Shown: positions 1,677 to 37,979 of the stretch, in pieces
Layout of the letters: every line of letters begins with the position of its first letter
Position numbering within the stretch: position 1 is the first letter of the stretch
Source of the DNA: Octopus bimaculoides
Taxonomy: Eukaryota
Direction of reading: 5' to 3'
DNA: 64,000 nucleotides
Assembly (NCBI RefSeq): GCF_001194135.2
Contig: NC_068982.1
Coordinates: 133,743,883-133,807,882 of the forward strand
Position numbers and translations under genes: made by a program
Notes under the pieces: generated by a model
What the model was told of the DNA's origin: nothing
Seen by the model: only the letters and a program-made list of their open reading frames with translations
The model's database searches: none

Positions 1677-1739
1677 AGAGTCTAATTCGACACAGTAGCT
1701 GCGAGCAGCGAGAATTAATAGATGACCGAAAAATGTTAG
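1677..1739 (+). CDS. Internal coding exon, 63 nt, phase 1-1, of an unidentified + strand gene; (x)SLIRHSSCEQRELIDDRKML
   Basis: Acceptor ttttttatttttgcag|AG and donor TTAG|gtaagc. Only the phase-1 frame is free of stops. The peptide resembles the exons at 9988 and 37908. Confidence 0.7.
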
Positions 1740-2559
1740 GTAAGCAAATCTATTCATTACCACTCTTTTTACTATGCTCCTCCTTCTCTCCTCCTCCTCC
1801 TCCTCATCATCATCATCATCATCATCATCATTTACTGGATATTTTAAAGGAGAGAGAGAAAATGAATGAAATAAACTAAAAAAAAAAATCAATATTTTGA
1901 TTTCTTCTTACTTTTTTGTCTATGTCTTCAGTTTTAACAAGATGGCTTTCAATCTTTTTTTTACACATTTTCACCAACTTAAAGACCTATATTTGTTTAT
2001 ACACACCCATACCCTACCATATCTACCATACTCATCATACTTGTGTTTTTATCATCATGTTTTGGTAACAGCTTTCTTTGAAAATGTATTCCATTGAAGA
2101 AACAGCTTTAGTGTAATTTCAATGCTTTCAAAGATATTTTCTCCAGTAAATTACTAAATATGTATGCAAATGAGCATAAAATTATAAAAGTCTATACATT
2201 ACTTGATACTTTTCAAAAAATTATCTTGCTTTCTGTTATTGATTACCTGTTGTCTAACCTGTCTAGAAGCCCTTCATTGAGCACCTTGTCAACTCAATAA
2301 ACTTCAGCTTTGGAACTTCTGTCTTGGTTTTCCTACAGATATCAACTCACAAAAGTTTAAGTTGAGCATCAACTGCATTGCCCCCCATTTCACCCTCCAC
2401 TGGTTACAAGCCAGTTAGGCAGACTCTTTATCTGGATACTTGACATGGTAAAACAGCAGTCTTGAATCACTAAGCCTGAACCCCCCCCCCCAAAAAAAAA
2501 AAAACCGATGGCCATAGTTTTTATTCATAACATTTTTTCTCTTGCTGAGTCTGGAGGAA

Positions 2560-3310
2560 AAGGCATTGCTCATGACCATTATAGCCCCACTTCTCCTAAG
2601 ACTAATCTGCTTGATGCTGTTAAAGTTCCATTCAAACTGTTGTTAAGTTAGCATATGTAAGTGAAGCATGAACTGGAAGAAGATTCCAGAGGGCCGATGT
2701 TCTAGGAAGGAAGGACTGAGAATACTGGTTAGTACAAGGCTTAGGCAGTTGGACAGAACAAATATGATGAGAGAGAGAGAGAGAGAGAGGCAGACAGACA
2801 GACTGGTTGGGAGTATCTGACTAGAGAAGGTACAAGATTAGCCAGCTGTGAGGAAGGAACATAAGCCATTTTCATAGTAATAGAAGAGACAACGTAACTG
2901 TTTGATTGATTTAATGTCAGTCATTTGAGTGACTTTTCTCTGGATTCAAGATGTCTTTGAGCATAGCAGCAGTACTGTCCCATATGCGGGAGCAGCTCTC
3001 AAATGTGGATTTCACATATTTTGTAGAGTGGCAGCAATTGTTGAGAGTTGAAATATTTTCTGGGTCTTGAAGAGAAATGCTTTGGGAGTCTTTGATTTGC
3101 CGTCCAAACTATGTTAAGTATGTGTTTTTGCCTGGAGAGATTTTGGTAATAGTGAAGCCAAGCATTTGGTGTGACAGTGAAGAATGTAGCTAAGTGTTGT
3201 TCATATTTAAAGGGATGTGGTGATGTTTCCTTGACATGAGTAATGCTTGAGTTTTTTTTTGTTTTTTTTTGCCTCCTTAAAAGAGACAAGATTGGCACTG
3301 TCTCACTGAA
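2560..3310 (-). mobile_element. Decayed 3' part of ORF2 of a CR1/L2/Jockey-group LINE
   Basis: Minus-strand translations include RKYFNSQQLLPLYK, YVKSTFESCSRIWDSTAAM (compare the conserved VRPxLEYCSxVW motif) and FLPRTSALWNLLP (compare FxxRxxxxWNxLP). Frameshifts, stops and a (GA)n insertion interrupt the frame. Confidence 0.75.
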
Positions 3311-3844
3311 GAATTCTCTCAAGGTGATCAAAATACTGCCTCAAATAAGTACCTAATCTATGTCAGTTTTGAAAACTGGATGTAAAACAAATGAACAGAT
3401 ATATTTGGTGATAAGTGTCTTGCTGCCAGTGCTATGTCTGACAATCCTAACTCTCATAAGTTCAGTCCACCTAGTAGAAGATAGGTACCATAAAGCAGTA
3501 GAGCCATATAGTTTGCTGATTGACATTTTAACACATGCTACTTTGCTGTGCTGAACTCAAATCTTCATCATTAAACACTAGACATAAAAGTGTCTCTCAA
3601 ACATTTATGTAGTACATTGAAAACTGGTATAAAGTGCAGTCCACAGATATTTGTTAGTAATTAATGAATGGATATGATGGAGAGTGAAACAAAGATTTCT
3701 ATCTTATAAACACACACATGGACACGCACACACATACACAGTGATGTGTCATCACATATGTGGCTATCATTTTATCTTGTCTAATTTATTTTAATACAGT
3801 CTTATCTATATTTTCATAATTACATATATGTATGTAAATTTGTA

Positions 3845-3887
<43 letters not shown>

Positions 3888-4591
3888 ATATTTACACTTG
3901 CACATATGTGCATAGGTATAATATACACATGCATACAAATGCATAAATACAGATATAGACATATTGTTTCTGTGATTGTGTGAGTTGGAAAGAAATCTTG
4001 ATTCATTGGTGTGATGTACTTTTAACTGCTGAATGGAGATTTGCACTATTTAATAAAATACTGTCTAAAATATTTGTCACTGAACAAAGCAAGATTAACA
4101 CACATTTCACACCCATTTGTGGATTATTGTTTGTCTGTGTTCATGTATGAATGATAAAATTAGTAAATTAGTATACTGAAGGGTCAGTTAATGGATATAG
4201 ACTTAATTATCTGAATATTCACGCTTAATGATTTATTTCTTTATTTTTTTAAGAATTGTGTTTAGTATATTTTCTGCCTATATTGTCTTGCATTCATTTT
4301 TATTTACTAAATGGCTGGGATGGATTTAGCAATAATCATTAGCAATAATCGTAACAATAATCATTAGCTCAATATTGTTGTAGTGTTTTATACAGTTGAG
4401 TGCCCACCTTTCTGATAGTTGCTCAATTACAAACGTTGGATTGGCACAACCTGATAGACCAAAGCAGCTTGTACTATTTATGCTTCTTCTTACAATGGCT
4501 GCAGTAAATTTAAACATTTAGCCATATGGCTAGTAGAGTAATCCTTTCACTGTGTCATTGTAGCTCTTAAATGGATTAAGATAAAATAAGT

Positions 4592-4985
4592 ATAGACATG
4601 GCCTATTGTGTGGTTACAAAGTTCACTTTGTAATTAGGTGGATTAGAGTTCAGTCTCACTGCATGGCACCTTGGGCAAGTGTCTTCTGTTATAGGCAAAA
4701 ACTTTGCAAGTGGATATTGCAGACAGAACTGAAAGAAGCCCACAATGTGTGTGTGTCCCTTTTCTTGACATCATGGGGTCGTTATAAAAGAGAATCTCCT
4801 TTATGTAAGTGGGGTTTCTTGTTCCAGTCTTCTGTGGAAACAGTGACTGTAGGGAAATTTATATTGCTTGGAAACAGGTGAGAGTTGATGACAAGAAGAG
4901 TATCCAGTCATAGAAAATCTGCCTCAACAAATTCCATCTGATCCATGCAAGCATGGAAAAGTGGACATTAAAATGGTGATGACGG
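4592..4985 (+). mobile_element. Diverged tRNA-derived SINE, family A (CORE-like, octopus OR/OK type)
   Basis: Degenerate A and B boxes followed by GGCACCTTGGGCAAGTGTCTTCT and GAAAGAAGCCC. The same motifs recur at about 5570, 13930, 15750, 19855, 30083, 42402-42769, 44640, 45470 and 50620. Confidence 0.75.
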
Positions 4986-6217
4986 TAACAGTGCAGTTGT
5001 CTGTCAACATTCTGTATGCTGCATTTGTTCATTTTACATGCTTTTTTGATGTTTGCATGGGTTGGACAAATATACTGAAGCATTGTTTTATAGCAGGCTG
5101 CCCTTCTCGAGGATAGCCCTCATTTGCTTTTCAAGTGATCACTTATTCCATATGCTTTCAAAGGCTGTAAGTGACTGCCCAATTTGTTGACAGGAGACAA
5201 TGTCACAAAATTATTTCCAAAATCACACAATTAGAGTGGCTATAATAAACATGATTACTTCACCTGTTTCTCATATAGGCTTTGACCTGAGATATTTAAG
5301 AGGAATGAAATAAAATATTGTGATAGCCATGCCTTAATGAAACAATTGTAATTAAGAATTAGTCCTGAGTTTCAAAACCAATTTGGCATGATCCTACATT
5401 TTAATTTGCAGAGATTGTTAACAGTAACCAGTTGATAATATCTATGCCCGTATTGATCAGGATTTTCCGTTGGACAGGTTATTGCAGCAGCTTAAACTTG
5501 TAAATGGATGAATTTGTATTAATATGAAGATGGAGATAAATTTAGTTAAGAAACACATAGTTCCGGAGTGGCACCTTGGGCAAGTGTCTTCTACTAATGG
5601 ATTTGGTAGACGAAAACTACTCAAAGCCTCACACTCACACACACACACACACAAACATATATATTTGTGTCTTTGTCTCCATGTTTGTCCCTTCCACACC
5701 GCTTGGCAACTGGTGTTGGTGTTTTACATCCCTGTAACTTAGTGGTTTGGCAAAAGAGACTAATAGGATAAGTACCAGGCTTTTAAAAAGTTAAGAACTA
5801 GGGGCAATTTATTCAACTAAAATTCTTCAAGGTGGTGCCCCAGCATGGTCACAGTTTAATGATTAAAACAAGTTAAAGATAAAACATATATGTATATATA
5901 TAGTGATATAGTGTACTGTACCATGATGGTAAAATCAGCAAAACAAAGTACTCCATCTGGTGAGAGATAACTATCATTTAATAAACACCATATATGTTTT
6001 TTATGTGCTACTACTAGTGATAAAAGCATCTCAGTATTTTTTAACATGCTTGGTGCCTTAGCACAATCTTCAGATGCTCCATGGGACCATTGCCTGAAGA
6101 TTGCAATAAGGTACCAGATATGTTAAAAAATACTGTCTAAAATGCTTTCATTCCATGAAACTAACTGTAGCACATAAAAACATATATTGTATTTATTAAA
6201 TGAGATATATATATATA

Positions 6218-6422
6218 CCGCCTGACTGGCCTTCGTGCCAGTGGCACATGAAAGCACCCACTACACTCTCGGAGTGGTTGGCGTTAGGAAGGGCATCCAC
6301 CTGTAGAAACTCTGCCAAATCAGATTGGAGCCTGGTGTAACCATCTGGTTCACCCGTCCTCAGTCAAATCGTCCAACCCATGCTAGCATGGAAATCGGAC
6401 GTTAAACGATGATGATGATGAT

Positions 6423-6424
<2 letters not shown>
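6218..6424 (+). mobile_element. Young short retroposon, family B, with RTE-like 3' tail ending in (GAT)n
   Basis: Near-identical to 39952-40193 (GGAGTGGTTGGCGTTAGGAAGGGCATCCA...CCAACCCATGCTAGCATGGAAA...GATGATGAT). Confidence 0.85.
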
Positions 6425-6460
<36 letters not shown>

Positions 6461-6650
6461 TTCAAATTTATAGAAAACCAAAGGCGAAAACAGGTGTAGG
6501 AACAACAAGCAGGTGTATTAGTTTAATGCTTGGGAAAAATGGAAAAGTTTTTTTACATTTCGAGCCTACACTCTTCAACAGGAAGGATTAAGAGGGAAAA
6601 AATGGAAAGAGAATGAAAAAATGAGCTGAGTTCAACGGTCCAACATGGCT

Positions 6651-6697
<47 letters not shown>

Positions 6698-7208
6698 GCA
6701 GGGGATGTATATATGTATTTGTTTGTGTTTGTCTTACTCACTACCACCATTGCTTGACGACCAATGTTAGTTTGCTTATGCCTCCCCCCACAAACTTCCA
6801 GTTCAGCAAAAGATACTGATAAAATTAGAAATAACTACTGGGCTCAGTTTGAAATACATAAGCAGTAACTGGTAAATACTTTATACCTTCAGTTTGGGTA
6901 GAATGTCCAGTACTGTACACCTAAAATCTCACTAGGGTTAAATAGCTTGAATGGGTAAACTGTGCAGCAGACTCATTAATACTTGGAAAATAACTATAAT
7001 GATTATCTAAAGCTGGTATTAGGTCTGATATAACAGGATTATCAGGAGAAATTTTAAAAGCAGGTTTGAACCTCATGGTAGCTCTATTATCATAAGATAT
7101 TAAATTTGTGAAACAGAGTACCAAATTACCAAGCATTGAGTATGGTTGTTGTTTTTCTGCCTAAAACAAATCTTGAAAATTTACTGGCATCCTAAAGGAT
7201 ACCAGTAA

Positions 7209-7708
7209 TACAGTTTTAACCCCCCAGAAGAGGGTTATCTATGCAAAATTTATCATGTCTGTACTATAAAAAACAAAATAAGATAAGTGGAGACTATCCT
7301 TATACCATTATATTTGGAATGGTCATATTAACCACATGCACCGTATACTTGATTTACAATTCAGTTTTATTATTATCATTATTATTATTATTATTATAGT
7401 CTCCTTTGTCTGAAATCTTTTGTCAAACTAAATAGAACAGGAGATGCGTGGGATGGAAAGTTGCTGAAGAGGTCACAGGATTTATGGCAAAACATTTCAC
7501 ACAAAGGACACTAAAATAAGAATAATAATAACAATAAAACTGAAATGAAAACCTAGTTATATAGTACATGTGTTTAATTGGTAAACAAATACAGTCATCC
7601 CCAAATATAACAATATCTATTTCAACACACAGTTTCACATCAAAACAAATACATAAATGTATCATTATATCACTAGGTCACAAACAAAATATTTTGGTTA
7701 AAAATGTA
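7209..7708. mobile_element. MITE or non-autonomous DNA transposon with long imperfect inverted repeats, possibly Tc1/mariner-type
   Basis: Ends TA-CAGTTTTAACC and GGTTAAAAATG-TA are inverted. Internal arm acatgcaccgtatacttgatttacaattcagttttattatt matches the reverse complement of aataataacaataaaactgaaatgaaaacctagttatatagtacatgt. Confidence 0.5.
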
Positions 7709-8171
7709 CTGTGACTTCGCTTTCTGTTTTATCAGGATTCATAGAATGTCCTTGACATAAAGAAATACTGTAATTAAAATAAGGATACATATTATTGATC
7801 CCATTCTGTTTGTATCCCAGTTTTTAGAACAGGTACATATCCTTGTATGTCATAAGAGATAACTAAAAGGGGTGGTTTCAGGAAGGGCATTCTGCCTCAA
7901 AAAGCCCTGTCCAACCCATATCAGCATGGATAAGTGGATATACAAATAATGATAAATGATTCTATTGAAGCAAGATATTTCTTATAAGGAAATCTTTCCT
8001 TAAGGGTCTCCTTGTCAACTTAGATATATTTGATTCAATCTGAGAACAACAAAAGCTGGAAAGAACCTGACTTGCAATGTTTGATTTTATTTTACCCCAA
8101 ATAAGATGACACCAAAATCAAGCCTTCTATTTGGTTAAAATAATTTCTTTTTCTCCAAATAAGATTATGTT

Positions 8172-8435
8172 TGAAAGCACATGGCCTAGTGGTTAGTGTG
8201 TTGGCACCCATGATTGCAGGGTTATGGTTTCAGTTCCTGGACTGGATGGTGTGTTGTATTCTTGAGCAAAACACTTCAAGTTGCTTCAGTTCACTCAGCT
8301 GCAATTGAGTAACCCTGCACCTGACTGACATCCCATTCAGGGGGAATATTGTGATCTCAGTCACTTATGCACCAAGGGAACCATATAACTGACCTTAGGA
8401 GTCCTGTGACTCAAGACAGTAATGGCTAGGTGTTG
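8172..8435 (+). mobile_element. tRNA-derived SINE, family D (CTTGAGCAA..CACTT central motif)
   Basis: A box TGGCCTAGTGG and B-box-like TTTCAGTTCC. Related copies lie at about 26757-26940 and 33880-33990. Confidence 0.6.
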
Positions 8436-9695
8436 ATGGTGATGATGATGATGGTGATGGTGATAAAGGTGGTGATGATGATGAGAATGATGAAAGTTAA
8501 AATATCACTGAAAATACTGTGAGGGGAGGAGTTTCCTTTCATTGATTATCATAGAAATTGTAGCTGAAACAGTTCCTGTCAAGTCACATCAGTTAAGAAG
8601 ACATTGGTAACTCTTGACGATGTTATAAGCACTTGTAGTATCTACAATATATGCACAAGTATTGAAACTTAATCGCATTGCGAATATCAAGTGGAACATG
8701 GGGAATATAAATAAATTAAGGGGGAGGTTAGACTAGAATTGTCATGTGATTTTTTTTTTTCCTGTAGACAAAATGACTGTTTTGACTCTTGACCTCATGT
8801 GAATGAAACTTATAAGCATGAATGAATGAGTATAGGGTTATATAATCGTGTTCTCTTTAAACAAGATATTTTGTAATGGTTCCTTCATGTGAATATGTCT
8901 TCTATAAATGATGTTTTATGGACACAAATCAGACTATATAATTAAGGGCTCATAAGACAGAGGGTCAAAAACCACCCCAAGATGGAAAAAAATCAGAAAG
9001 CCAACTGCAGGACACAAACTATGTCTCAACTGTACCTCCAGACAGTCATGATACCATTTTACTAATGTAGTGTTCCAACTTTCAATCATCCAAATTACTT
9101 TAATATTTCAAGTGAGAAAGCAAGTTTGCTTGCTTCCTTACATTTAGAATGTAAATATAGAAGCATTGAGAAATATGTAAATATGTCTTTTATAAGTGAT
9201 ATTATCTTGAATGCCAATTCAGCCATAAATAATAACTCACATTTCAGAGGGTTAAACCCCGTTAGATAGAAAAAGAAAATGCATTCTAAATGTAAACAAA
9301 GTTCCTTTACTTATTTATTTATTTATTTATTTATTCATTCATCTTCTAGCAGTTTCCACTTTAATCATTTATTTGGCATTGATCAGTCAGTATATTGGAA
9401 CTGAAATGAAATAAATACACTTCAGAAGTTTGGTTTGAAGTGAATTAACTATTACTTTGATACAATATTTTTATTGTTGATGCTGGTGGTGGTGTTGTTT
9501 TTTAGTTAACTCAGCGCAAGAAGACCTTATGATATGGAAATATCTAATTAACAATAATACTCCATTTTTTCCTATTTAACTAGCAAAATTCAGACAAAGA
9601 ATGTGAAGACTTAAAAACGTGCTTCTTATTTTAATGAAGAAAGTGAGATGTTCTTGATTGAAGTTGTGCTGGCTTGGTTTTTACTTGTGATCTAA

Positions 9696-9911
9696 CCCTT
9701 TAGCATTTAAGCTGGCCATATACAGCCCAAATATTCTACCTGTCTTATGTTCAAACCAGCCAGGTCCAGCCTCTTACTCCGACCCTAGAATTTCATTCAG
9801 AAAATAGTCACATCATCAAAGTCTCAAAGCTACAAGATAATGCATGATTAATTAAAAACAATGTGAATAAATAAGTATTAAATTGAACAGAGTAATGTGA
9901 ATGTTAATAGG
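9696..9911. mobile_element. piggyBac-type MITE
   Basis: Begins (c)taa|CCCTTTAGCATT and ends AATGTTAATAGG|ttaa, i.e. a degenerate short TIR with TTAA-like flanks. A second piggyBac-like MITE family appears at about 33625-33800, 40295-40520 and 44205-44420. Confidence 0.55.
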
Positions 9912-9987
9912 TTAAGTAATTATCCTTTTGTAATATTTATAGCTTTTAGTCCTGTTTGAATTTGGAATTTAAAATTGCTTTTTCCAG

Positions 9988-10050
9988 AAAGTCCTACACT
10001 GCATCACATTTCAGAAGATAAAGACCCAAAAGAAGAACATAAAACTTATG
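9988..10050 (+). CDS. Internal coding exon, 63 nt, phase 1-1; (E)SPTLHHISEDKDPKEEHKTY
   Basis: Acceptor ttgctttttccag|AA and donor TATG|gtaagt. Open in the phase-1 frame, which is compatible with exon 1677-1739. Purine-rich. Confidence 0.7.
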
Positions 10051-13754: not shown

Positions 13755-15342
13755 TTCTTGAATCAATCATGAAGTTAAAAGTTCCAGTGGTTTCCCAACA
13801 ATACATACTGTAATAGTATATTATTATAGGTAATCTTTTATGTACTGTCTCTGAGAGGAAAAACAGTTTAGGGGGATCTTATTTGGAAAAGTGAATTCAC
13901 GGAATGGTTACTGTAAATGCATTATTTAACAGGTATGGCTTGTGATAAAGAAGATTTGCTTCACAGCTATGTGGTTTTGGGGTAGTCATGCTGTACAGCA
14001 CCTTGGGCCAACAAAAGCCTTGTAAGTGGATCTGATAGATGGAAACTAAAAAAAAAAAAAAAACCATTGGATGTGTGTGTGTGTGTTCTTGACATTACAC
14101 ACTAACTGTAAATGAGTGTTACCATCATACAAGTAGTTTCATTCATCTGCAATCATTCATGAATTCACATCCAGGCATTGTACTGTTCATTTTCGAAAGA
14201 CCAGAGAAAATATTACTTTGCTTGGAAACAAGTTAGTGTTGGCAACATGAAGAACAAAATTTGCCTCATTGAATTTTTATCTATCTCGTACAAGCATGGA
14301 ATAATGCTTGTGTAAAAAATCGTGTTTTTATTCATGAAATTTATGAATGCCAACCTGTTTGCTAACCTATTAGAGTGAAGAAATGTCTGAATGGGCAAAG
14401 CATTGAGTTCAAATCCACTGTGGAATGTTTCTCTCTGTCTTGGGCAAGACTCTCAACTCTGTATTGCCTCAGTTCACTTAACCACACAGAATAGAGTGCA
14501 TCTATGCAAGAGAATCTTTGACTTGTTTTACACCACAGAATCCATAGGTGAGGACCAGATTTCTGGGTATCTGTGATTCACAATAAAGATTAATTAATCT
14601 AGTTTCCTGATTACCTTTTGTCTCCTCATACACCTAAACAGGTTTCCACAAATATAAGATTGTTCTTTTTTCTTATAGAACTCACAAAACACAAATTAAA
14701 ATGTCCATGATTAGCCTTCATTTGTTCAATATCTTAGCTATCTAGTGCGCGCTCTCTCTCTAATTAAATTGATGTGGCAGCTACTTGAGAAATGGCCAGT
14801 GTTTCCAACTAGAGTAGTCGTTACTTCCACCATTCTTTGGACAATTTTTTTTTGTCATTTTTCACAATTTTTTTTTTTAAATGTCTTTTTGATGATGATG
14901 TGTTTGTGTTTGTCTTCTTTTGTGGGTTTTTTATGTGGTTGTTTTGTGTGAGTTTGTGTTTGATAATTTACAGTTAATTGTGTTTTTAATAGATGGTAGT
15001 TCACACTCGATTTCAATAATAACCTCATGATTTATTTAGAATTAGACAATATTGTTGTTGTTGTTGTTTTATACTTTGTCTGGCTCCATGATCAATATCA
15101 CCTTTAATCTCTTTAAAGATTTAGTCTCATCGGTTTGTTTGTATTTTTCCTTCCCTCACCCCCTCCCCAACCATTCTTTATCAAATGATGTATATATAAT
15201 GACTATAAATATTACAAGATGAAAGGCAAAGTCAACCTTGGCAGGGTTTGAACTCAGTACTTAAAGAATCATGACTAAATATTATTGGTTCAGCTGTCTA
15301 CTGTTTCTGCCACTCCACCACATTAATTATGTATGTCAGAAG

Positions 15343-15378
<36 letters not shown>

Positions 15379-15388
15379 NNNNNNNNNN

Positions 15389-18943: not shown

Positions 18944-19443
18944 AAAATTTAAGGAATAGAGAAAACGCATGTTATAATTGCATACTTTATTCCTACATAT
19001 GTTTCAAAGGATTACAACCTATGTGATCCATAGGGATCTGTGATATTAAAATTGTAACCTTCTCATCATCTTAAACGTAAGACATTATGACCGAGTATGT
19101 AAACAATAGATGGATAAGGTTATGACGTGATTCATTTGAAAAAAAACCGTTAGAGAATTGGATGCTGCCGGATAGTAGGTTGGACAACACATACNNNNNN
19201 NNNNGCTGCCGGATAGTAGGTTGGACAACACATACATATAAATGTGTGAAAACATACATGCATACATAAATACATATACACATACATACATACATACACA
19301 TATATACACATGTATGCTTTCCCTGATGAGAAGGTTACAATTTTAATATCACAGATCCCTATGGATCACATAGGTTGTAATCCTTTGAAACAGATGTAGG
19401 AATAAAGTATGCAATTATAACATGCGTTTTCTCCATCCCTTAA

Positions 19444-21754: not shown

Positions 21755-22258
21755 TGCAGTGACTCTCATGGCTTCTGATCTTAACTGATAGGAAGTGTTA
21801 TCATGTACGTTGTTTTGTCTTGGTATAAAAGATGGGCTACAGCAAATATTCTGCCTATTACCATAGATTTGCTTGTCAGTTTCTTGACCCTTAGTGGCTG
21901 ACGATATGTGCATCTTTGATCATGTGCAGAAATAGTTGGGGAGCATCATAGCCATGTGTTGAGAGGAATTCTTTGGGGTTTGGATAATTCATCTCTAGAA
22001 ACATGGGTGTGTTGTTCATCATCCTTAAACAACCCTTATTCAGGGACCTCTTGAGCAGAATGGACTACTCAACCTGATGAAAATTCTAACTGGGTCCCAC
22101 CTGCAAGGTCATGCACTGTTTATCTTGATGTAAGGTCACCATGTCACAGACAGGTAGTCATAATGGGTATACTGGGCTTCGTATATTTGTACCCCAGTGT
22201 CACTTTGATGGCATGCACTGCTCTCTCACTCGATGATGATGATGATGATGATGATGAT
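21755..22258. repeat. Unclassified interspersed repeat ending in (GAT)n
   Basis: Its terminal segment CCCCAGTGTCACTTTGATGGCATGCACTGCTC recurs in reverse orientation at about 62990-63028. Confidence 0.5.
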
Positions 22259-22261
22259 ACT

Positions 22262-23915
22262 TTCTATTATAGGCACCATGCCTGAAATTATTTAGTGGGG
22301 TGGGGACTTGTCCATTACATTGACTTCCCCCTCCGCCCAGCTCAACAGATACTTATTTCATCAACCCTCAAAAGGATGAAAGGCAAAGGTAAATCAGCAG
22401 AATTTGAACTCAGAATGTAGAGATGGATGAAATACCACAAAGCAGTTTGTCTGGCAGGGAAACAATTCTGCCAGCTTGCCTTGATAATATAGATGATGAT
22501 GATGATAATTGTTTCAAACTTTAGTGTAAGGCAAGTAACTTTAAGGGGAAGAGGTTTAGTCAATTACATTGACCCCTGTACTTGACTGGTACTTCATTTT
22601 ATTGACCCCGAATTAATGAAAGACAAAGTTGAACTAAGAATTTAAATAGCTGGATGAGATGCTGCTGAACATTTTGTCCAATGATAGTTATTTCTAATAT
22701 AAGCAAAAGGTCTGAAATTTAGGGAGTGGGGTTAGTCAATTACATCAACCCCAGTACTTGACTGGTACTTCATTTTATTGACCCTGAGAAGATGAAAGAC
22801 AAAGTTGACCTCAGTGGAATTTGAACTCAGAATGTAAAACCAGACGAAATACTGCTCAGCATGACTTCTAATTTTAGCACAAGGCTGGCAATTTCAGGAG
22901 TGAGTACAAGTCAATTACATTAATCTCAAGTGATCAACTGGTATTTATTCTATCAACCCCGAAGGGATGAAAGGCAAAGTTGACCTCGGTGGAATTTGAA
23001 CTCAGATGAACAAAATGCCACTAAGTATTTTGCCCAACATGCATTCTGGTATTAATGGCATAGATAATGCCAAGCAAATAAGTCTTGAATTACAAAAATT
23101 TTATTGAAACCTTCAATTTAAATTAATCATTTCCAGTTGGAAGATAGCAATGAAATATTTTACTCAGAAGATAGCAACAAAATATTTTACTTTATAACAA
23201 AATGGAAACTGAATTTTATTAAAAAATAATAATAATAATCCTTTCTACTATAGGCACATGACCTGAAATTTGGTGGGAGGAGGAGGTCAGTCGATTAGAT
23301 CAACCCAGTATGCAACTGGTACTTATTTTATTGACCCCGAAAGGAGGAAAGGCAAATTTGAACCCAGAACGTAAAGACAGGCGAAATACCACTAAGCATT
23401 TCACCCTGCATGCTAATGGTTCTGTCAGCTTGCTGCCTTAAAATAATAATAATAATTTCTTTTTTTATGCTATAGGAGCATGTTTCTGATCTGGGTACAA
23501 GGGAAGCAATTTTGAACTGAAGGAAAGAAGGTGAAGCCACTGACCTCTCACTCCCAGTACTTGACTAGTGTTTCATTTTGTTGACCCAAAAGGACCAACA
23601 GTGAAGTTGAGACTTCAATGAGATTTGAATTCAAAACATAAAGAGTTCGAATAAATACTGCAAGACATTTTGTCTGACACTGATGATTCTACCACCAATC
23701 TACACTCTGACTTAATTATTTCTAACATAGATACAAAGTCAAAAATTTAGTAGAGAAGGGTTGTTAAATCAATCCTGGTACTTGATTAATTTTTAATTTT
23801 ATCAAGCCTGGAGAGATGAAAGATTTCAGTTAACTTGGGTGGGTTTGAATTCAGAACATTAAAAGTCAGACAAATACCTCCAGGCATTTTGTCTGACACT
23901 AACAATTCTGCCAAA
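22262..23915 (-). mobile_element. Head-to-tail array of about 7 family C tRNA-SINEs
   Basis: Repeated minus-strand units containing TTTTATTGACCCC..AAGGATGAAAGGCAAAGTTGACC...GAATTTGAACTCAGAA (B box GAGTTCAAATTC on the minus strand), separated by (ATA/GAT)n. Confidence 0.85.
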
Positions 23916-25853: not shown

Positions 25854-28399
25854 TCAGTCTAATTTTGGCACAACGCTAGCAATTTTGAGGGGAGGGGTGT
25901 TAGATAATATCATAAAATTCATAACTTGGGTTCACAACTTTGTAAGGCTTCTATCAGTTAATATTAGTTTCAAATTTTGGCACGGAGCTAGCATTTTCAA
26001 GGGTGAGGTAAGTTGATTACATTGACCCCAGTGCTCAACTGGTACTTATTTTATCAACCCTGAGAGGCAAAGTCTACCTTACAACTTTATAAACAATTAA
26101 AAAAAATATATAACTAGACCCAATGCAATTTGTATAATAGTTTCTTTTGATTTTGTAGCACACAACTTGACAGACACATTTATCATCATCACCACCATTT
26201 AACACCTGTTTTCCATGCTGGCATGAGTTGGACAGTTTGATAGGCACCAAGAAGCCAGAGGACTACACCAAGCTCCAATGCCTACTTTGGCAAGTGAGCC
26301 AACATTCTAAACTATAAAAGATTTCACTACGAAAAGAATAACAATGAGATAAAATCCTACCACGCAGTAAAAAATTGTAAGACTGAACATATTTCCCTCT
26401 CCCAAAATATTTGCTGTGTAAGGTGTACCTGCTGGTGCAGTGAAATTCTGTGTGAAACTACTCAAATCAATAATTAATAATAAAAATGTCACAACATTCT
26501 ATTTGTCTCTTCCTTGTAAATTTGAACCTTGTTGCTATGTAAGAAAGTTATTTATAATTTAGCTTGAAGTGTACAGGAGATGGCCAAGATAGTCAAGTGC
26601 TGGATTAAACATTTTGTGGGTGTTTTTTCTTGTTTTTTTTTTGTCTTTATTTCACTTATTGTCTTGATGAAATAATAAGTATGAAATAAATACTGCAGTC
26701 ACCTAGGTCAAGTACTCGCCCACTATTTATCCGTAGCCTTGTATCTAGTTATCAAAGCACTTAGCCTGGTGGTTAGGGTCTTGAATATGGTCACAACTGT
26801 TAGGTCATGAGTTCAATATTTGGACCAATGGGTCCAGTATGTCCTTGAGCAAGGCACTTTGTTTCAGCTAACTCTGGTGTGCTCAGCTAAAAATGAATAC
26901 CAGTGACAACTGGGATTAACTCTGATTTGGAATAACATTTTNNNNNNNNNNGGGGGGGGGGGTAGTGGAGATGAGTCTTGTTTTTTCAGCCTAAATGCCT
27001 TGAAAATTCAGATGAGCTCCGATCTTATGTGATGGTAGGCTTTGAGGCTGAATTTGCCACCAGTTAAATGAAGTGAATATTCTGCCTAGCTCTATAGGAC
27101 AAACGGAGCACATTTTTGAAATCCATTTCTTCTAATTACTTTTTTTGAGAAAGTGTTGTGAATTCTCAGAATCATTCCAGCAATAGATAAAATTGCTTTT
27201 CAGTATTTGTTCCTGCTCTATTCCCGAGTTCAGATTCTGCCACAATTAACTTTCATCCTTCTGGGATTGGTAAAATAAAATACCAGTCGAGTACTGTGAT
27301 CAATATAATCAATTATACCACTCCTTCCAAATTTCTAATGTTGTGTTTATATTAAAAAATTTTATTCTTGAAAAGGGCATCAACACCACCACACAACTTT
27401 ATTCTCCTGTCATTATAAATGAGATGTTTTGTACCTTAGATGAAAAGCAATATTATTACATGCTATATTCAAAGTGGTGAACTGGAAGAATCATTAGCAT
27501 ACTGGACAAAATGCTTAGCAGTTCATCCATATTTACATTCTGGGTTCAAATTCTGCCAAGGTCAACTTTGCTGTCATCCTTTTGGGGTCGATGAAATAAG
27601 TACCAATTGAGGTCATTGTAACTGACTTACTCTCCCTACAGGACTTGCTGGCCTTGTACCAAAAATTTGAAACCAGTATTATCACGTTATAGTTTCTGTT
27701 CCCTGTTGTTAGTGATTTTTCACTTTATTTCATTTCACTTACAGATAAATTAAGAAAATGGTGTGAATGAATGTCACATACTCTAGTTTTAACCTACTGA
27801 TGAAGCTGAAACCTTGTCACTTATGTAAGAAATATAAAAAAATAATAAAAATGAAACAAAAAAGCAAAGAGTTATGCATTTTTATCATTGTAAAATAATA
27901 ACAATTTTCAGGTGATCCAAGTTTATAAGCTTCTATCATTTCCTAATTGGGGACAGTTTACCCTTTATATATCACTGTTGTGCTTGAGTGATAAACATTT
28001 CAGTCTCATTTTCCTTTACCTCCATTCTTTATATCAATCTATCTCCTAGCCAGTATTGAGTAAGAAGACTTTTATCTCCTCTTTGCTTTTCTTTCTTTTT
28101 GGTCTTGTGACATTTTTTTTCCTTTAAATATTAATTTTCCTTTCAATATTTCTTTTAATCTTTATCTTATCAACATCAAGACAGCTATGACTACCACCAC
28201 CACTAACCACCACCACCATCACTGTCACCAACGTCACCACCACCATCAGCAGCATCACCAATACTGTTATTTCACCCATCACTACCACTACACCACTCCA
28301 GTTCAGAAACTGTTGAAACAAAAATCCTCCTATAGATTTTATTATTATAGTAGCTTCAACATTTCTTTTGCACAGGCGGAAAATGGTGTTTGCTAATCT

Positions 28400-28983: not shown

Positions 28984-29028
<45 letters not shown>

Positions 29029-29371: not shown

Positions 29372-29405
<34 letters not shown>
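28400..29405. repeat. Compound low-complexity block: (TC)n, (GATA)n, long CT-rich tract, (CA)n
   Basis: Directly visible. It explains the overlapping Ser/Leu-rich and ER-rich ORFs at 28678-29421. Confidence 0.95.
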
Positions 29406-29406
<1 letters not shown>

Positions 29407-30012: not shown

Positions 30013-30017
30013 ATTAA

Positions 30018-30082
<65 letters not shown>

Positions 30083-30083
<1 letters not shown>

Positions 30084-30445
30084 GTGCAGGCATGGTGGTG
30101 TGGTAAGAAGTTAGCTTCCCAACCACATGGTCTTGGGTTCAGTGGAACCTTGGGCAGATGTTTTCTGCTATAGCCCCAGGCCAACCAAAAGCTTGTGAAT
30201 GGATTTGGTTGACTGAAACTGAAAGAAATCCATTGTATGTATATCTTCATGTTTGTCTCCCACCACTGCTTGACAACCAGTGTTGGTTAGTTTACATCCC
30301 TGTAACTTAGCAATTCAGCAAAGAGCAATTGACATAAGTGCTGAGCTTAGAAAAATAAATTACTGGGTTCGGTTTGTGTGAATAAACCCTTCAAGGCGGT
30401 GCAGTGCCCCAGCATTGCTGCAGACTAATAACTGAAACAAGTAAC
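30083..30445 (+). mobile_element. Family A SINE, plus strand, head-to-head with the 29655-30012 copy across (CA)n at 30019-30081
   Basis: GGTGTGGTAAGAAG...CCCAACCACATGG...GGGTTCAG...CCTTGGGCAGATG. Confidence 0.8.
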
Positions 30446-32363
30446 AATCGTTACCGTCATCAAATGCCACACACATATATGCACATGCGCGCGTGCATGT
30501 GTGGTGTGCATGCGAAGGAGAAAAGGAATGCCCTGGTGAGAGTGTAATTTTCAGTGAGTGTAAAAGTAGTTATCTCTCCACCTTCAACTGATTATTTCTC
30601 TGTTTACGAGTAGCACTCAATAGAGACTGGAGCAGTATATCTGAAGATGTATGTATATATCGGCAACCACAAACCATTAAATAATATAGAGCTGAGTCAA
30701 CTTATTAAATGCTTACAATTCTAACTAAATACGCTGAGTGCTATTTTCTTTTGTTTGTTCACTCAGCCGTGTATGTGTGTGTGTAGCATCTACATACGCT
30801 TGTGTTGTTGGACACACATGCATATTCATAGGTCGTGTATATATGTATTTATGTTCCATTTCTGGTTTAATTTTTTCGTGTTTTATTTTGGTTTGGCACT
30901 TGTTCATCTGGCAATTTTGTAAAGACAAAGTAATAAAGAATGAAAAATGGCTGTCTTGATCTTTTCATCATCTTTTATGGTATCAATTGTCCTTTAAACC
31001 TTAAGGTCTTGTACATTTTTTTTATTGTCCCACGTCATCTATGAACATCTGTAGCATATCAATCAATTATGGCACTAAATTCTTTCACCAAAGACCCCAA
31101 GTTCAGTTACACTTTGATCTCAACAGATTTGTATACATTCTGTCATTCAAGTGATAAATGGACATAATTTGGTGAACTGGCATAATTATTAGTGTTGGAT
31201 AATATGACTCTCAGCATTCTGAGTTCAAATTCCATCAATGACCACTTAATTTTTCATTCTTTCAAGGTCAATGAAAAAATACTAATCCATGGTGGTAGTG
31301 GTAGAGATGCTTTAAAGAATCATGGGAACTGCCTTCCTCCTAGAAAGGAAATAAAATATAAGTTGCAAGATTTTGTAAAGAAATAAATATTTTTTCTCTA
31401 TGAGATATCTAATTTGATGTGTTCAAGATAATTCCTGTTTCATTTTTAAACAGTTAATAAAAACTAATCTTCATTTTTTATATTCATTTAATTGAAACCA
31501 TGGTATGTTTTGTAGTTGATATATTGTTTTCACACTACTACATGTCTGTGGTAGCTATTCACATACAAGTGAACTTTGGTCATAAAAAAAGCCAAGTCTC
31601 TTAGTAATGGGTGCTTCTCTAAATTGGATAGGATGTAAACTGACAACTCCATAACTTAACTGTCATAGCTATTTACATACAGCTAGGTAGATTTTGGTCA
31701 TAAAACAGTTGGGTCTCTTAGTGGTGGTTCCTGCTCTAAATCGGGCAGTATATGAACTGACAACCGCTTAACTAAAACTATCCATTTCTTCTCTTTGTAA
31801 AGAACAGAGGTTTATTTTGAAGTGATCTGTTACAAGATGTGTTACTTTGATTATATTTTAATGAACCACATCTCCAAACTATTCCAAGTTGACTGAAAGT
31901 GTTACCTCATGAAATTTAAATGTTTTCTGAATATTTTATTCCATTTCACTTGCCATTTAGGACCTGGTTATATTCAGCAAGCCTGCTTCGATTAGTCTAC
32001 TAATAATAAATATTGATTTATATTATAGACTGCTGCGGTGCGCACAAGGAAATTTGGTGCTAAATTCATTTATGTCACCTTAATTAAGTTTGTCAGAAGT
32101 TATTGTTCCGTTAGACAGAGATGATGTTCTTAGTTGTAAATTATTTCACATTTCTAAAATTGATAGATTGTAGGATGCGAAATAGAATTTGGGAGTAAAA
32201 TTTTTCAACTTAATTTCTTATGACAATGCTTTTGAGGGTGAATATGAAGTGGACAAAAATATATTTAAAAAAATGAAATGCTTTTGTATATTAGCATATG
32301 CAAATAACACAAAGTATACATTTGTTTTCCTTTCATACAGCAAGGGCTCCACATGCATATAAA

Positions 32364-32417
<54 letters not shown>

Positions 32418-33110
32418 AATATAAATATAATGAATGTATTTCTTGTCTGAGTGTATGTATATGTGTGTGTATAGTGAACATAGTTATTGCATAGCTCCCT
32501 GTTCCCCCTTCCCCTACCATTTTACACTACTTTTGATAATTAGGAAGTTGTGAAACCAATTAAGTTGTTGTAAATAAATCTCCTTGATAAAGGACCCAAG
32601 GTGCATTTTCAACAGGGATTTTGTGTGCCTATTCTAAAACTAGGAGACACACAGATAATTTGACCTCAGGGCTGCATATTAATGTACAGTACTGAGCTCA
32701 GATTGTCTGTCAGGTGGTCGTATTTGCCTGGCTGACTTGCTTTAGATGCTTTACATCATGGTCACAGTGTTGCTTCAATGGTCTGGTAGCTTAAGAACCA
32801 TATATATCTATTCATGTTTGACCATATATGATCTCAAGCAGGTTGGTATTTTTAGGGCTTAATAATTTTGAAAGTTATCAAGTCAGGCATTTAAAAAGAA
32901 TTGTTTATCAGAAAATATTGAATTTCTCTAAGTAAATAAGTAACTTTATTTAATTTTTAGAAAACTTTGTTCCTTACACTAATATTGATGGAAATATATC
33001 TTTGGTGAGCCACAGAAATTTTGGTAAGTTAATCCCTGCCAAAATAATAAATTTTGTATTAACCAAATTTTACTTTTAATACTACTAATACTTGTAAGGT
33101 GGGGTGAACG

Positions 33111-33555
33111 GGAAGAACTGTTAGCATGCCAGGCAAAATATTTAACAGCATTTTGTCTGTCTTTATGTTGTGAGTTCAAATTCCACTGAGGTCAACTTTG
33201 CCTTTCATCCTTTCAGGGTTGATAAAAAGTACCAGTCAGGTACTGGGGTTGATATAAATGATTTACCCACTCCTCCAAACTTGTTAGCCTTTTACCAAAA
33301 TTTGAAACCAATATTACTGATACTAGATAAAGCAGCAAGCTGACAGAATTGTTAGCATATTGGGCAAAATGCTTAGTGGGATTTCATCCAGCTTTACATT
33401 CTAAGTTCAAATTCCACCGAGGTTGGCTTTGTCTTTCATCCTTTCAGGGTTGATAAAATAAGTACCAGTCAAACAGTGGAGCCAAGGGGCCAGTGTAATT
33501 GACATATCTCTCCCCCAAAAGTGCAGGCCTTGTGTCAAAATTTGAAACAAATATT
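33111..33555 (+). mobile_element. Two tandem family C SINEs
   Basis: Both contain GAGTTCAAATTCCAC.GAGGT...CTTTCATCCTTTCAGGGTTGATAAAA and end AAAATTTGAAAC.AATATTACTGA. Confidence 0.85.
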
Positions 33556-34437
33556 ACTGATTCTAGTGAATATTTACCGATTTTTGTTGAAGGTCTGTGT
33601 ACAGGATATTTTTATTTATTAACTGCTTTGATACCAACCTGCCTGAGATTGCCTGTACTTTAAATTAAAATGTTTAAATTAAAATTCCAATAAAAGTCTC
33701 ATGACATGAATGGTACTGTGAAGTTTTAAGTTGGTCACCACCAAAATAATTTGCTGGTTTATAAAGTTACAGGTATTTCATTAAACCTCTCCAAAATCAT
33801 TATATTAAAACTTGATAGAAAATACATAGGCAGGTTACTCATTATAAACATAGCCATGAAAGAGTTGTGGAAGCATCTGATTTAGTAGTTAGGGTGTTGG
33901 GCACATGATCATTAGGTCATGAGTTCAATTCCTCACTGGGGACTACATTTATTTTATGTCACTCCAGTCTACTCAACTGGAAATGAGTACCATTTGAGTA
34001 CTGGTGCAGCTGTTTTACTCTCCAAATGTCACATTCTTAAGGTACTGCTGAGTTAAAGGTGGGAAAGCCAAGAAGGTATTCGCTTATGACTACATAGGTG
34101 CCTAAAACAATCAGTAAAAGCATGATACATGCTCTCATGTCAGAGGTGTTCATGCTTGAAGATTGTAGGCAGGAGCATTCTGCAAAGTTAGTAAATATAT
34201 TTGGCGAAAGAACCAAAAGGTCTGGCTGAAATCTTTGTGAGGCAGCTTCCAGACCATTTGATGTATGAAGGCAGAATTTGCATTCCCAATGGTCATCTTG
34301 CAGGCATTGCTATGGTGGATGGATACACCTAAAAAAAACAAACAAACAAGAAACTTTCCTTTCTAAATTTTCACTAAAAACATTACTATATACTCACTTC
34401 TGTCTTTTCCAATACTCTCTCTCACTCTCTCTCTCTC

Positions 34438-34473
<36 letters not shown>

Positions 34474-34577
34474 AATAGGATGAATTCTTTTACAAGAATT
34501 TATCAAGTAGCTCGCGTGAAAAAAACCTCAAAAAGGGGAAAAAATCCATCATTTATTCCCAAAATATATATTTATTT

Positions 34578-34815
34578 ATATAAGGGTTTTGCTATACAAT
34601 AATGCCCCATGCTATGAGGGACTCTAAGGTCAGACTACCATAAAAAACACATTTTTACCGAACGCGAGGAAATGCAACTCTCAAAGCCAGCCCCTTAAAA
34701 CCAGACTTAATTATATTTGAGAGTTGCATTTCTTCGCGTTCGGTAAAAATGCGTTTTTTATGGTAGTGTGACCTTAGAGTCCCTCATAGCGTGAGGCATT
34801 ATTGTATAGTAATGG

Positions 34816-34822
<7 letters not shown>
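34578..34822. mobile_element. Fold-back element (MITE-like) with ~108 bp inverted arms and ~30 bp spacer, flanked by TA repeats
   Basis: 34578-34685 matches the reverse complement of 34716-34822 with about 9 mismatches by manual alignment. Confidence 0.8.
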
Positions 34823-34850
<28 letters not shown>

Positions 34851-35447
34851 CAATTAAACCTTGGGAGAGGCATTATGCCAGTAATAAACACACGCACTGG
34901 TTCAGTCCTTTATTAATTTATATAGTTTTTTGTTAAATTATTTCATTGCACTCTTGCAATCTCTTCAGTAACTTGTCTCTCCACTTCCATTTATTTTGAA
35001 TATATATACTAGTTTCTTTCTCTCCACTTTCTCTACCTTTTTTATATGCACACTTTTCATTTCCATTATAAAACTGTCGACTTTGAAGATGAATCCCTGA
35101 AATATTAACCCAACTAATCTAAACTCTATTTTATGTGTTACATTAACTCTGAATTTGGTCCTTTTACTTGTGCTTTATAATAAAAATATTATCTAAAAAT
35201 GCTGAAAGCTAAATGCTTGCAATTAATGAACATTGGCGTGTGTCAGAGGTGTTGGCTGATGTATGCAAAACAAATGAATGGCATCAATAGGGATGTAACT
35301 TAAGTGGACAATATGGTTTAGTGATCTGATCTTGCAGTCTAAATGGGGGAGGCTTTTGGGGTCAGTTGGTGAAATCTTATCTAGGTATTGTGTCAGATGA
35401 TGGTAGGGAAGACTGAGATTTGAGGATAACTGTTGTATTGTACACAG

Positions 35448-35519
35448 CTCCACATCATAGCAGAATGGTAAAAGAGAATGATGAAGATCTGAAAGAAGAT
35501 GGTGCTGACACCAGCAATG
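35448..35519 (+). CDS. Candidate internal exon, 72 nt, phase 1-1; (A)PHHSRMVKENDEDLKEDGADTSN
   Basis: Acceptor gttgtattgtacacag|CT and moderate donor AATG|gtgatc; alternative donors at ATG|gtaaaa and GATG|gtgctg. Purine-rich and open in phase 1. Confidence 0.45.
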
Positions 35520-35559
35520 GTGATCAGGCTGTTGAAATCAATAAGGACATGACATTGAT

Positions 35560-35581
35560 TATGACTGATAGATTTGATGAC

Positions 35582-35628
<47 letters not shown>

Positions 35629-36105
35629 GCAGTGACAGCAGCAATGATGATGTAAACAATGATGACTACAACAACAACAATAATGTTGATGAAAAGTATA
35701 AGTTGATGATAATGATAATGGTGCTGTATATGATAATGATGTTTGAGAAATAATTGAATTATGAAAACTTGAAAATTTGAGTGGCATGCATGTGCATGTA
35801 TGCATGCATGCACTTGCTCATTCATAAATGCATGTGAAAATGGTGTTTGGAAGATAAATGAATTNNNNNNNNNNAAATGAATTATTTAAATGTGTAAAAT
35901 GTTGAGCAACGCAGACACATACATGCATGTGCATAAATACATTAGCATGTGTATACACTTGCACATGCACACAATCACGCATTCTGTCATTCACACACAT
36001 ATACACAATAACACATTGTCATGCACACATATACACAATCACATATTGTGTCACACATACACATATACACAATCACATATTGTCACTTACACATACACAT
36101 ATTTT
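35560..36105. repeat. (ATA)n/(GAT)n trinucleotide tract followed by a CA-rich minisatellite (CACAATCACATATTGT-like units)
   Basis: Directly visible. 10-N gap at 35865-35874. Confidence 0.9.
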
Positions 36106-36859
36106 TGACAGCAAAACAACAACAGCCAAAACTTTGATAATCATGGATATTTTGGAAGATAACTAAATTATTACGAAACATTGTAAAATATGAGCTACAT
36201 GCAAATTATTAACGAACAACAACAAATTTAAAGAGCCTTTAAGAAAGAGGTTCTTTTTAAAAATACCATCACACACACACACACTTACACACTCACAAAC
36301 AAACAAAAAAAGATGAAAATACAATAAAAATCCTAACTATATTTTCTCTAAACATCTCCAGCTGAATTATTATTTGCTATTCTTCTAAAAGAAGATTGAA
36401 ACTAATTTATTTCATTTACCCTTTTTTACCTCGTCTTCCTCTTCTCATATCTCTCTCTCTCTATCTATCTATCTCTCTCTCTCTCTCTCACTTTCCCCCT
36501 CTTACTTTCTGTCTTTAGCATCTTGTAGTTATTCCGCTAGATGCTGGAAAGGAGATTATCTAAAGAGAACTAGAGATTACTTGCAGCAGAAACAATATTG
36601 ATGGTCAGTGAACAAAGGATAAGGAAATATAGTCTGTCTATTGATTATTGTTTTTGCCTCTCCATCCCCTTCTTCCCCCCACTCCCTCTCTTCCTCCATC
36701 CTCTTACTCTTCCTTCTCCTCCTCCTGGACTTTGAAGTTATTGCAATAGTAGAGTAGAAGAAATAGGAAAAAGTGCTTTTGATGATTTTGATGTCGTCTT
36801 CTACTTTCTTATTTGAGTATTGATAAAACAGACAGACCTACAGATAAAGAATTATAGAT

Positions 36860-37062
36860 AGACACGCATACACACAGATGTGCATGGATGTGCACATACA
36901 GATGTGCATACACAGAAACAGTGCACAAATATACATGAATGTGCACATAGAGACACTCACACACTTACATTCAGGCAATATCATGCACACATTAATTCTG
37001 ATGCACCACACTTTTAAAGACATATGCACATACTTGCATGTCCACACATTCACACGCATGCA

Positions 37063-37102
<40 letters not shown>

Positions 37103-37450
37103 TACACACACACACACATGCACAAATTTTTGCATACATGCACAAACACTTGTGCATATTTGCAGACATGCACAATTGCACACACCTAAACAATTTCAGA
37201 AACTCTTGTGCATACATGTACCTACATGCACAATTAAATAAACACTTCTGCATACATGCACAGCTACGCTGGTGCATTTGCGCACATGCATGCACAATTG
37301 AACAAACACTTCTGCATGTGTATACACGTTAAGAATTGCAGAAACACCTCTGTAAATATGCATATATGTGCACCTCTGCAGTCACTTGCATCCATGTGCA
37401 CACATATACAGCATACACACAGCGCATGCACTCACACACACACATGCATA
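36860..37450. repeat. Degenerate CATGCACA/TA low-complexity minisatellite
   Basis: Repeated CATGCACAATT..AAACACTTCTGCAT units. These account for the cluster of C/H/M/Y-rich ORFs. Confidence 0.85.
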
Positions 37451-37907
37451 TACTTACTTTGGTGGTAACCATAAAGGATTTCCAAGAATTTTTTTTCTCA
37501 GTTGTGGTTGTTAAACATTTTGAAATTATTACTTGGGCTTCTGTGCAATCTTTATATTGGAACCCCCTATGGCAATTTTAGCATTACCTTATTAAAAAGT
37601 TAGTATTTCACTTTGGATGATAGTCTTTGAAATCTCCAATTGTATTCAACTGAATGCAACAACAAAAAAAAAGAAAGATGACAAAAAAAAAAGAGAGAAA
37701 GAAAAGGAAAAGCGATAAACTTCGCAATTAAACTAATTGCTTTAGAATACCAGAAGTAGCAGAATTTCAAACTGTTGAAACTTTCGTCTTCAAATGATAC
37801 CAATTTCTTTAATTACATTTATATAGTTACTGTTGTTACATATTGTATGTAGTATATTTGTCCTGAGGTGCAATCTGAAAGAAAATTACTTATTTGTATA
37901 ATTTCAG

Positions 37908-37979
37908 CAGACAGTCCGGTAATAAGAGATAGCTGTGATAGACGGGAAACTGTCTTGGAGAATCACAGACAGTTCAACG
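37908..37979 (+). CDS. Internal coding exon, 72 nt, phase 1-1; (A)DSPVIRDSCDRRETVLENHRQFN
   Basis: Acceptor ttatttgtataatttcag|CAG (NAGNAG) and donor AACG|gtaagt. Open in phase 1, CpG-containing, and similar to exon 1677-1739. Confidence 0.75.

Follow-up and report, generated by a model that had tools for sequence, protein, structure and literature searches.

Three short phase 1-1 exon candidates with similar charged peptides in a 64-kb stretch of the Octopus bimaculoides genome

We have analyzed a stretch of 64,000 nucleotides (64 kilobases, kb) from Octopus bimaculoides (NCBI RefSeq assembly GCF_001194135.2, contig NC_068982.1, positions 133,743,883 to 133,807,882 of the forward strand), which is referred to below as the window and whose first nucleotide is position 1. 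Three short segments of its plus strand, e1 (1677-1739), e2 (9988-10050) and e3 (37908-37979), have the borders, the frame and the phase expected of coding exons, and their putative peptides resemble one another more closely than expected by chance. With little more than even confidence, and judging from the sequence itself, we regard e1, e2 and e3 as real, anciently duplicated, symmetric mini-exons of one plus-strand gene, each of which would encode one unit of a disordered, charged repeat.

The candidates e1 and e2 are 63 nucleotides long and e3 is 72 nucleotides long. With two bases before the first full codon and one after the last, each is of phase 1-1, and all the lengths are multiples of 3. 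The borders (marked here by slashes) read ttgcag/AG..TTAG/gtaagc in e1, ttccag/AA..TATG/gtaagt in e2 and tttcag/CA..AACG/gtaagt in e3, and the putative peptides are (E)SLIRHSSCEQRELIDDRKML(G), (E)SPTLHHISEDKDPKEEHKTY(G/A) and (A)DSPVIRDSCDRRETVLENHRQFN(G), respectively. A preliminary description of this DNA had given the same coordinates, lengths, G/gtaag ends, phase and peptides, all of which proved correct on re-reading. It had also stated that the frame is preserved, and indeed all 7 splice combinations of e1, e2 and e3 keep the frame open. In e1 and e3 the phase-1 frame is the sole open frame. On a simple position weight matrix (PWM), the donor sites score 5.6 in e1, 6.0 in e2 and 6.4 in e3 and rank among the 20 best of the 3506 GT sites of the plus strand, and the acceptor of e1 scores 5.0, which is good. 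As a calibration we scored the two introns of the O. vulgaris rhodopsin gene, whose donors reach 4.9 and 4.5 and whose acceptors reach 6.5 and 6.0; the donors of all three candidates are thus at least as strong as these real octopus donors on the same scale. The GC content is 0.41 in e1 and 0.46 in e3, compared with 0.29-0.31 and 0.28-0.31 in their respective flanks, a contrast of 10-18 points. Purines make up 0.63 of e1 and 0.60 of e2, and 0.60-0.63 of all three segments, against 0.49 of the whole window. A separate scan for open segments with strong splice sites singled out the same three segments of the plus strand; no other candidate was both hydrophilic and outside repeats, and nothing comparable was found on the minus strand of the window.

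The similarity among the three peptides is the second line of evidence. The global sum-of-pairs score of e1, e2 and e3 is 54, compared with 4.7 ± 9.8 among composition-preserving shuffles (z = 5.0), and none of the 5000 shuffles reached it. The preliminary description had asserted that the peptides align and had named shuffled controls of the three-way alignment as a check on this assertion. The global score bears the assertion out and is significant under that check, but local alignment is suggestive only for the pair e1-e3 (P = 0.011), whereas e1-e2 (P = 0.31) and e2-e3 (P = 0.17) are at chance level. With alternative gap penalties z ranges from 4.7 to 5.6, and in reversed-sequence controls the sum-of-pairs score falls to between -4 and 10. 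The pairwise global comparisons give P values of 0.023, 0.0036 and 0.010, of which 0.0036 belongs to e1-e3, and e2 is the least similar member. As an empirical null we used 336 unique-sequence, non-overlapping AG...GT segments of 60-75 nucleotides from the same window, all open in phase 1-1. Among 20,000 random triples of these pseudo-exons none reaches 54 (the maximum is 47), and still no triple does so when only polar or only charged pseudo-exons are sampled. This unique-sequence null replaces an earlier pseudo-exon null (P = 0.005-0.04), which was inflated by overlapping peptides and by duplicates derived from transposable elements (TEs). Since e1, e2 and e3 had been picked by splice quality and not by similarity, the similarity score is free of selection bias. 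The common layout can be written as [ED]-S-[PL]-aliphatic-x-x-x-S/I-C/S-[ED]-x-[RK]-[ED] ... [ED]-x-[RH]-[KR]-x-[LYF]-(N)-G.

The DNA of the three segments is less similar than their peptides. No match was found by blastn at E ≤ 1, either between exons or between flanks. In an ungapped comparison of the first 14 codons, e1 and e3 are identical at 20 of 42 nucleotides, e1 and e2 at 19 of 42, and e2 and e3 at 15 of 42, with third positions least conserved. It had been proposed that the cores of two of the exons differ mainly at third codon positions. This is weakly supported by the 18-nucleotide core, where third positions account for 4 of the 6 differences; across 14 codons, 7 first, 8 second and 5 third positions are identical. 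The weakness of the local and DNA similarity implies that any duplication must be old. Since the similarity is greater in the peptides than in the DNA, is lowest at third positions and stops at the exon borders, it points to coding divergence and not to copies of a transposon. A dispersed repeat or transposon copy was also rejected directly, as each exon is unique sequence with no second copy of the exon and its 200 nucleotides on either side in the window, and the flanks are not similar. The relationship among e1, e2 and e3 thus appears to be an old one, visible mainly in the protein frame and ending at the exon borders, which fits diverged coding exons. Of the marks of a family of duplicated exons, a common phase, frame-preserving lengths and significant peptide similarity are present here.

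We then asked how far this family extends. A hidden Markov model (HMM) of the e1-e3 family found no further copy among the six-frame open reading frames (ORFs) of at least 12 residues on both strands of the 64 kb, and the best non-member, on the minus strand, scored 8.3 bits. The pattern of the three segments fits the old exon duplication that had first been suggested, but the word "array" that went with this suggestion is too strong for three copies. A fourth segment, 35448-35519, had been put forward as a possible diverged member. We rejected it: its splice sites are poor (acceptor 1.5; donor gtgatc, 0.74), a quality matched by 15 other pseudo-exons on the plus strand and 17 on the minus strand of the window, its similarity to e1-e3 is at the level of its own shuffles (z = 0.39), and it was missed by the family HMM. 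The preliminary description had not recognized the repeat as one of a named family, and our searches agree: no Pfam family and no chain in the PDB was matched at E ≤ 10, and phmmer gave no credible match.

The joined peptide of e1, e2 and e3 has 67 residues, among which are 16 D/E, 11 K/R and 5 H. Charged residues (D/E/K/R) thus account for 27 of the 67, and the mean hydropathy is -1.35. An AlphaFold2 model of the joined peptide is mostly coil, with a predicted local distance difference test score (pLDDT) of 61 and a predicted template modeling score (pTM) of 0.14. The units probably form an intrinsically disordered linker. Both e1 and e3 contain the pattern R-x-(x)-S, which is similar to the sites of basophilic kinases, so that these two units might be phosphorylated.

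Several observations weigh against the view that e1-e3 are exons in use. All three segments had been described as having strong splice sites. This is true of the donors and of the acceptor of e1, but the acceptors of e2 (2.5) and e3 (3.0) are weak and far below the two real octopus acceptors on the same PWM. The segment e2 has two open frames, and its GC content of 0.33 shows no excess over its flanks. No convincing phase-1-compatible exon was found downstream in the remaining 26 kb after e3. Protein collections were also searched. In a word-indexed search of 5.8 billion cluster representatives (90% identity) with the joined peptides of e1, e2, 35448-35519 and e3, no representative had three 5-residue words in common with the query. 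A rhodopsin control shows what this collection holds: the rhodopsin cluster includes O. vulgaris (GCA_951406725.2), O. sinensis (XP_), O. bimaculoides (XP_ and EukProt) and two Logan transcript ORFs. The collection therefore covers three annotated Octopus proteomes, and e1-e3 are in none of their representatives. When 1.84 billion representatives were searched exhaustively with phmmer, P0008 (E = 5.8e-6) was the only match. We judged it spurious, because this tandem-repeat ORF aligns weakly at 'EALHHSNDNQSPKQH' five times over. This protein of 558 residues consists of about six tandem repeats of about 90 residues ('...QPWQQADDEQWKEQEALHHSNDNQSPKQHPTMATSWWWA...') and resembles a translated satellite. 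Two back-translated pattern scans of JGI metagenome contigs, made to detect host contamination, were empty. The negative protein searches count against constitutive, well-annotated exons and less against alternative or unannotated ones. The longest isoform does not always stand for its cluster (in that of rhodopsin, the representative has 455 residues and one member has 458), and isoforms with a cassette of 21-24 residues could be hidden behind the 90% representatives.

These observations bear directly on two other explanations. According to the first, e1-e3 are relics of a duplicated exon that formerly had a function, and the copies are now unspliced and decaying in a giant intron or in intergenic DNA. 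Their absence from the representatives of a collection with three annotated Octopus proteomes would be expected of relics, and so would the weak acceptors of e2 and e3, the lost GC contrast of e2 and the high divergence of the copies. Nevertheless, in all three the frame is still open, the acceptor is AG and the donor, G/gtaag, is close to the consensus. By a composition-based estimate, a given frame would be open over 21 codons about one quarter of the time in such AT-rich DNA, and without selection three copies are unlikely to have kept the frame together with both splice sites. We consider decay of this kind unlikely. According to the second explanation, e1-e3 are real exons but constitutive, not alternative cassettes, of a gene that the octopus annotations lack or model wrongly. 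The donors equal or exceed real constitutive octopus donors and the acceptor of e1 is good, and gene predictors are known to miss short repetitive exons between very long introns, as reported for the PEVK region of titin, whose exons are difficult for automatic annotation (PMC6469411). Such a gene must, however, have been missed by three independent annotations, two of them RefSeq annotations with RNA-seq support, and the acceptors of e2 and e3 are weak for constitutive exons. This explanation, too, has in our view a rather low probability.

A further possibility is chance: e1-e3 could be pseudo-exons of the ordinary intronic kind, in which good splice-like sites, equal phase and similar charged peptides have come together by accident. 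Introns are rich in pseudo-exons and an open frame of 21 codons is not rare; two of the three local alignments are at chance level, no match is seen in the DNA, and the databases give no support. To estimate how many such segments the window should contain, we simulated it 200 times with a third-order Markov model and counted segments of 45-120 nucleotides with a donor of at least 5.6 and an acceptor of at least 2.5, a length that is a multiple of 3, and an open frame in phase 1-1. The simulations contain a mean of 0.195 such segments per 64 kb, and none of the 200 contains at least 3. In the real window there are 4 on the plus strand (e1-e3 and one derived from a short interspersed nuclear element, SINE) and 1 on the minus strand (a repeated TE element). 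The only non-TE segments that pass are therefore e1-e3, all on one strand, which is about 15-fold over the Markov expectation, although the thresholds were chosen after the data had been seen, a further point on the unfavorable side that makes this test supportive and not exact. The three-way peptide score likewise exceeds those of the 5000 shuffles and of the 20,000 pseudo-exon triples, charged-only pools included. The count and the similarity statistics are largely independent, and the separate splice scan chose the same three segments without using similarity. Taken on both counts, chance is an improbable explanation.

The SINE-derived segment lies in an element at 14391-14573 of the plus strand, which has a tRNA-like box 'gagttcaaatcc' and a 'cttgggcaag...gcctcagtt' core and which we take, from this box and core, to be CORE-SINE/MIR-like. 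Within it, 14473-14547 is a 75-nucleotide segment open in phase 1-1, with an acceptor of 4.0 and a donor of 5.8, and it is frame-compatible with e2 and e3. It was rejected as a family member, being SINE-derived and having a similarity to e1-e3 of z = -2.1, and is possibly a case of SINE exonization.

Finally, e1-e3 might be recursive-splicing or decoy exons that aid the removal of a giant intron and are not kept in the mRNA, which the very long would-be introns (8 kb and 28 kb) and strong donors would suit, but recursive sites are recognized by the re-creation of a 5′ splice site at the acceptor itself (AG/GTRAGT), which is absent from all three (the exons start with AGAGTC, AAAGTC and CAGACA), such exons would have no reason for a common frame or peptide similarity, and we regard this as highly improbable.

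If e1-e3 are joined in one transcript, the intron between e1 and e2 would span 1740-9987 of the plus strand (8.2 kb), a region without a long ORF and with many microsatellites and dispersed repeats. That between e2 and e3 would span 10051-37907 (about 27.9 kb) and contains four assembly gaps, the SINE-derived pseudo-exon 14473-14547 and the rejected exon 35448-35519. These gaps are at 15379, 19195, 26942 and 35865. Since none of them touches an exon, the continuity of the reading frame is not at issue. The gap of 10 N at 19195-19204 has the identical 31 nucleotides 'gctgccggatagtaggttggacaacacatac' on both sides, and the gap of 10 N at 35865-35874 has the identical 9 nucleotides 'aaatgaatt' on both sides. 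These two are probably unmerged contig overlaps, in which case the sequence is continuous and the gaps are artifacts. The gap at 15379 lies between (TG)n and (AG)n and that at 26942 adjoins a run of 11 G, and sequence could be missing at both. Given the state of the gaps, the distance of about 27.9 kb between e2 and e3 and the completeness of this interval are to be taken as estimates only.

Two segments of the plus strand beyond e3 were tried as the next exon and rejected, as both are open only in a frame incompatible with the end of e3: 40665-40750 (86 nucleotides; acceptor 6.0, donor 6.8) and 52672-52747 (76 nucleotides; acceptor 4.0, donor 8.0). They may be pseudo-exons or frame-breaking "poison" exons. 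Within 300 nucleotides of the three exons, the splicing-regulator motifs TGCATG, YCAY, YGCY and UCUCU are not enriched, except for (CAT)n on the side of e1. A (CCT)n(CAT)n microsatellite is located at 1778-1835, about 40 nucleotides past the donor of e1, and the apparent excess of YCAY near e1 is due to it.

The window as a whole is AT-rich (A 19,991, T 21,236, C 11,053, G 10,911 and N 809) and neither of its strands contains a long ORF that is non-repetitive. Some 19% of its sequence recurs at least once elsewhere in the window, and microsatellites and dispersed repeats are abundant. It has dispersed repeat families in common with the DNA around the O. vulgaris rhodopsin gene (70 high-scoring segment pairs, 72-90% identity), which supports an octopod origin, and the two are equal in GC content. 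One high-copy dispersed repeat is found at 22254-23458, 33104-33559, 54646-56506, 61035-61456, 63031-63691 and other positions, recurs in the window up to about 26 times more, and is also found, at 75-81% identity, next to the rhodopsin gene of O. vulgaris. A gap of 759 N at 53518-54276 is located inside a long (TA)n/(TG)n microsatellite, away from the three candidates. At 58703-59245 of the plus strand there is a C-terminal fragment of ORF2 of a retrotransposon without long terminal repeats, broken by stops and followed by a gap at 59709-59718. This tail of a long interspersed nuclear element (LINE) has only 7 protein matches (ENA assemblies and EukProt, 40-65% identity), and its relatives adjoin RVT_1 ORFs on ENA contigs; the ORFs of TEs are left unannotated in the octopus proteomes. 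Scans of the window with Rfam and for tRNAs found nothing, and exact look-ups of three long ORFs of the window gave no record.

It is useful to compare e1-e3 with known systems of short repeated exons. In the PEVK region of titin, about 100 closely spaced tandem exons, which are differentially spliced, each encode one PPAK/poly-E repeat of about 28 residues. Like these, e1-e3 carry one short repeat per short, frame-preserving exon and have a product that is predicted to be disordered and is highly charged. In contrast to the dense array of titin, the octopus copies are three in number and separated by 8 and 28 kb, and no more were found by the HMM. The fraction of P+E+V+K in the joined peptide is 0.27, under the threshold for titin PEVK exons, a PEVK(+A) fraction of about 0.54 or more (PMC6469411). 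No similarity to titin was found in the Pfam, PDB or phmmer searches. Class 1-1 symmetric exons can, by Patthy's phase-compatibility rule, be duplicated, inserted or skipped without a frameshift, and e1-e3 resemble such shuffling exons in their phase and in lengths that are multiples of 3. The classical 1-1 modules are folded, usually extracellular, rich in disulfides and at least 40 residues long, whereas the units of e1-e3 have 21-24 residues, 0-1 Cys, no Pfam match and a low-confidence model that is mostly coil. Collagen-type exons of 54 bp are uniform and frame-preserving, encode a repeated peptide unit and arose by exon duplication. The segments e1-e3 likewise have a repeat unit on frame-preserving exons, but the joined peptide has 1 Gly in 67 residues and no Gly-X-Y, and the phase is 1-1 and not the 0-0 of collagen. 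Finally, e1-e3 resemble tissue-regulated (e.g., neural) cassette exons in being short, symmetric, hydrophilic and predicted to be disordered, with weak acceptors in two of the three. They are longer, at 63-72 nucleotides, than microexons, which one source puts at 30 nucleotides or less (PMC7821500). Duplicated symmetric exons in a disordered region would be of an ordinary kind, since the origin of frame-preserving repeat exons by duplication is well known, and nothing in the data suggests a new mechanism.

On the reading we favor, e1-e3 would be short coding exons of phase 1-1 that lie on the plus strand in a single large gene rich in introns. A single ancestral exon of about 63 nucleotides would have given rise to e1, e2 and e3 by old exon duplication, and each exon would now encode one degenerate, highly charged unit of about 21-24 residues, in which [ED]-S-P is N-terminal, S-C-[ED]-x-[RK]-[ED] central and [RH]-[KR]-x-aromatic/Leu C-terminal. 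Together the units would make up an intrinsically disordered linker. Because the phases are equal and the lengths are multiples of 3, any subset of the three could be skipped in frame. The weak acceptors of e2 and e3, together with the absence of e1-e3 from annotated proteins, suggest that some of them are alternatively included or unannotated, and alternative use of e1-e3 is plausible on these grounds. We infer their splicing, their translation, their membership of one gene, their origin by duplication, their role as a linker and their alternative use from the features described above. A more extended picture is doubtful, though conceivable: e1-e3 could belong to an octopod-specific, unannotated repeat family whose disordered and charged units, each about 22 residues long, might be phosphorylated at R-x-(x)-S, with one phase-1-1 exon for each unit, all in one gene with giant introns, where combinatorial inclusion would tune the length or valency of the linker and more copies would lie upstream of the window.

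If e1-e3 are real, they would be coding sequence that has apparently been missed by three octopus annotations. As the repeat is without known relatives, its function would be approachable only through the host gene. The three segments would then be a small example of short symmetric exons hidden in long-intron cephalopod genes, and they would bear on the quality of annotation and on studies of alternative splicing in cephalopod nervous systems.

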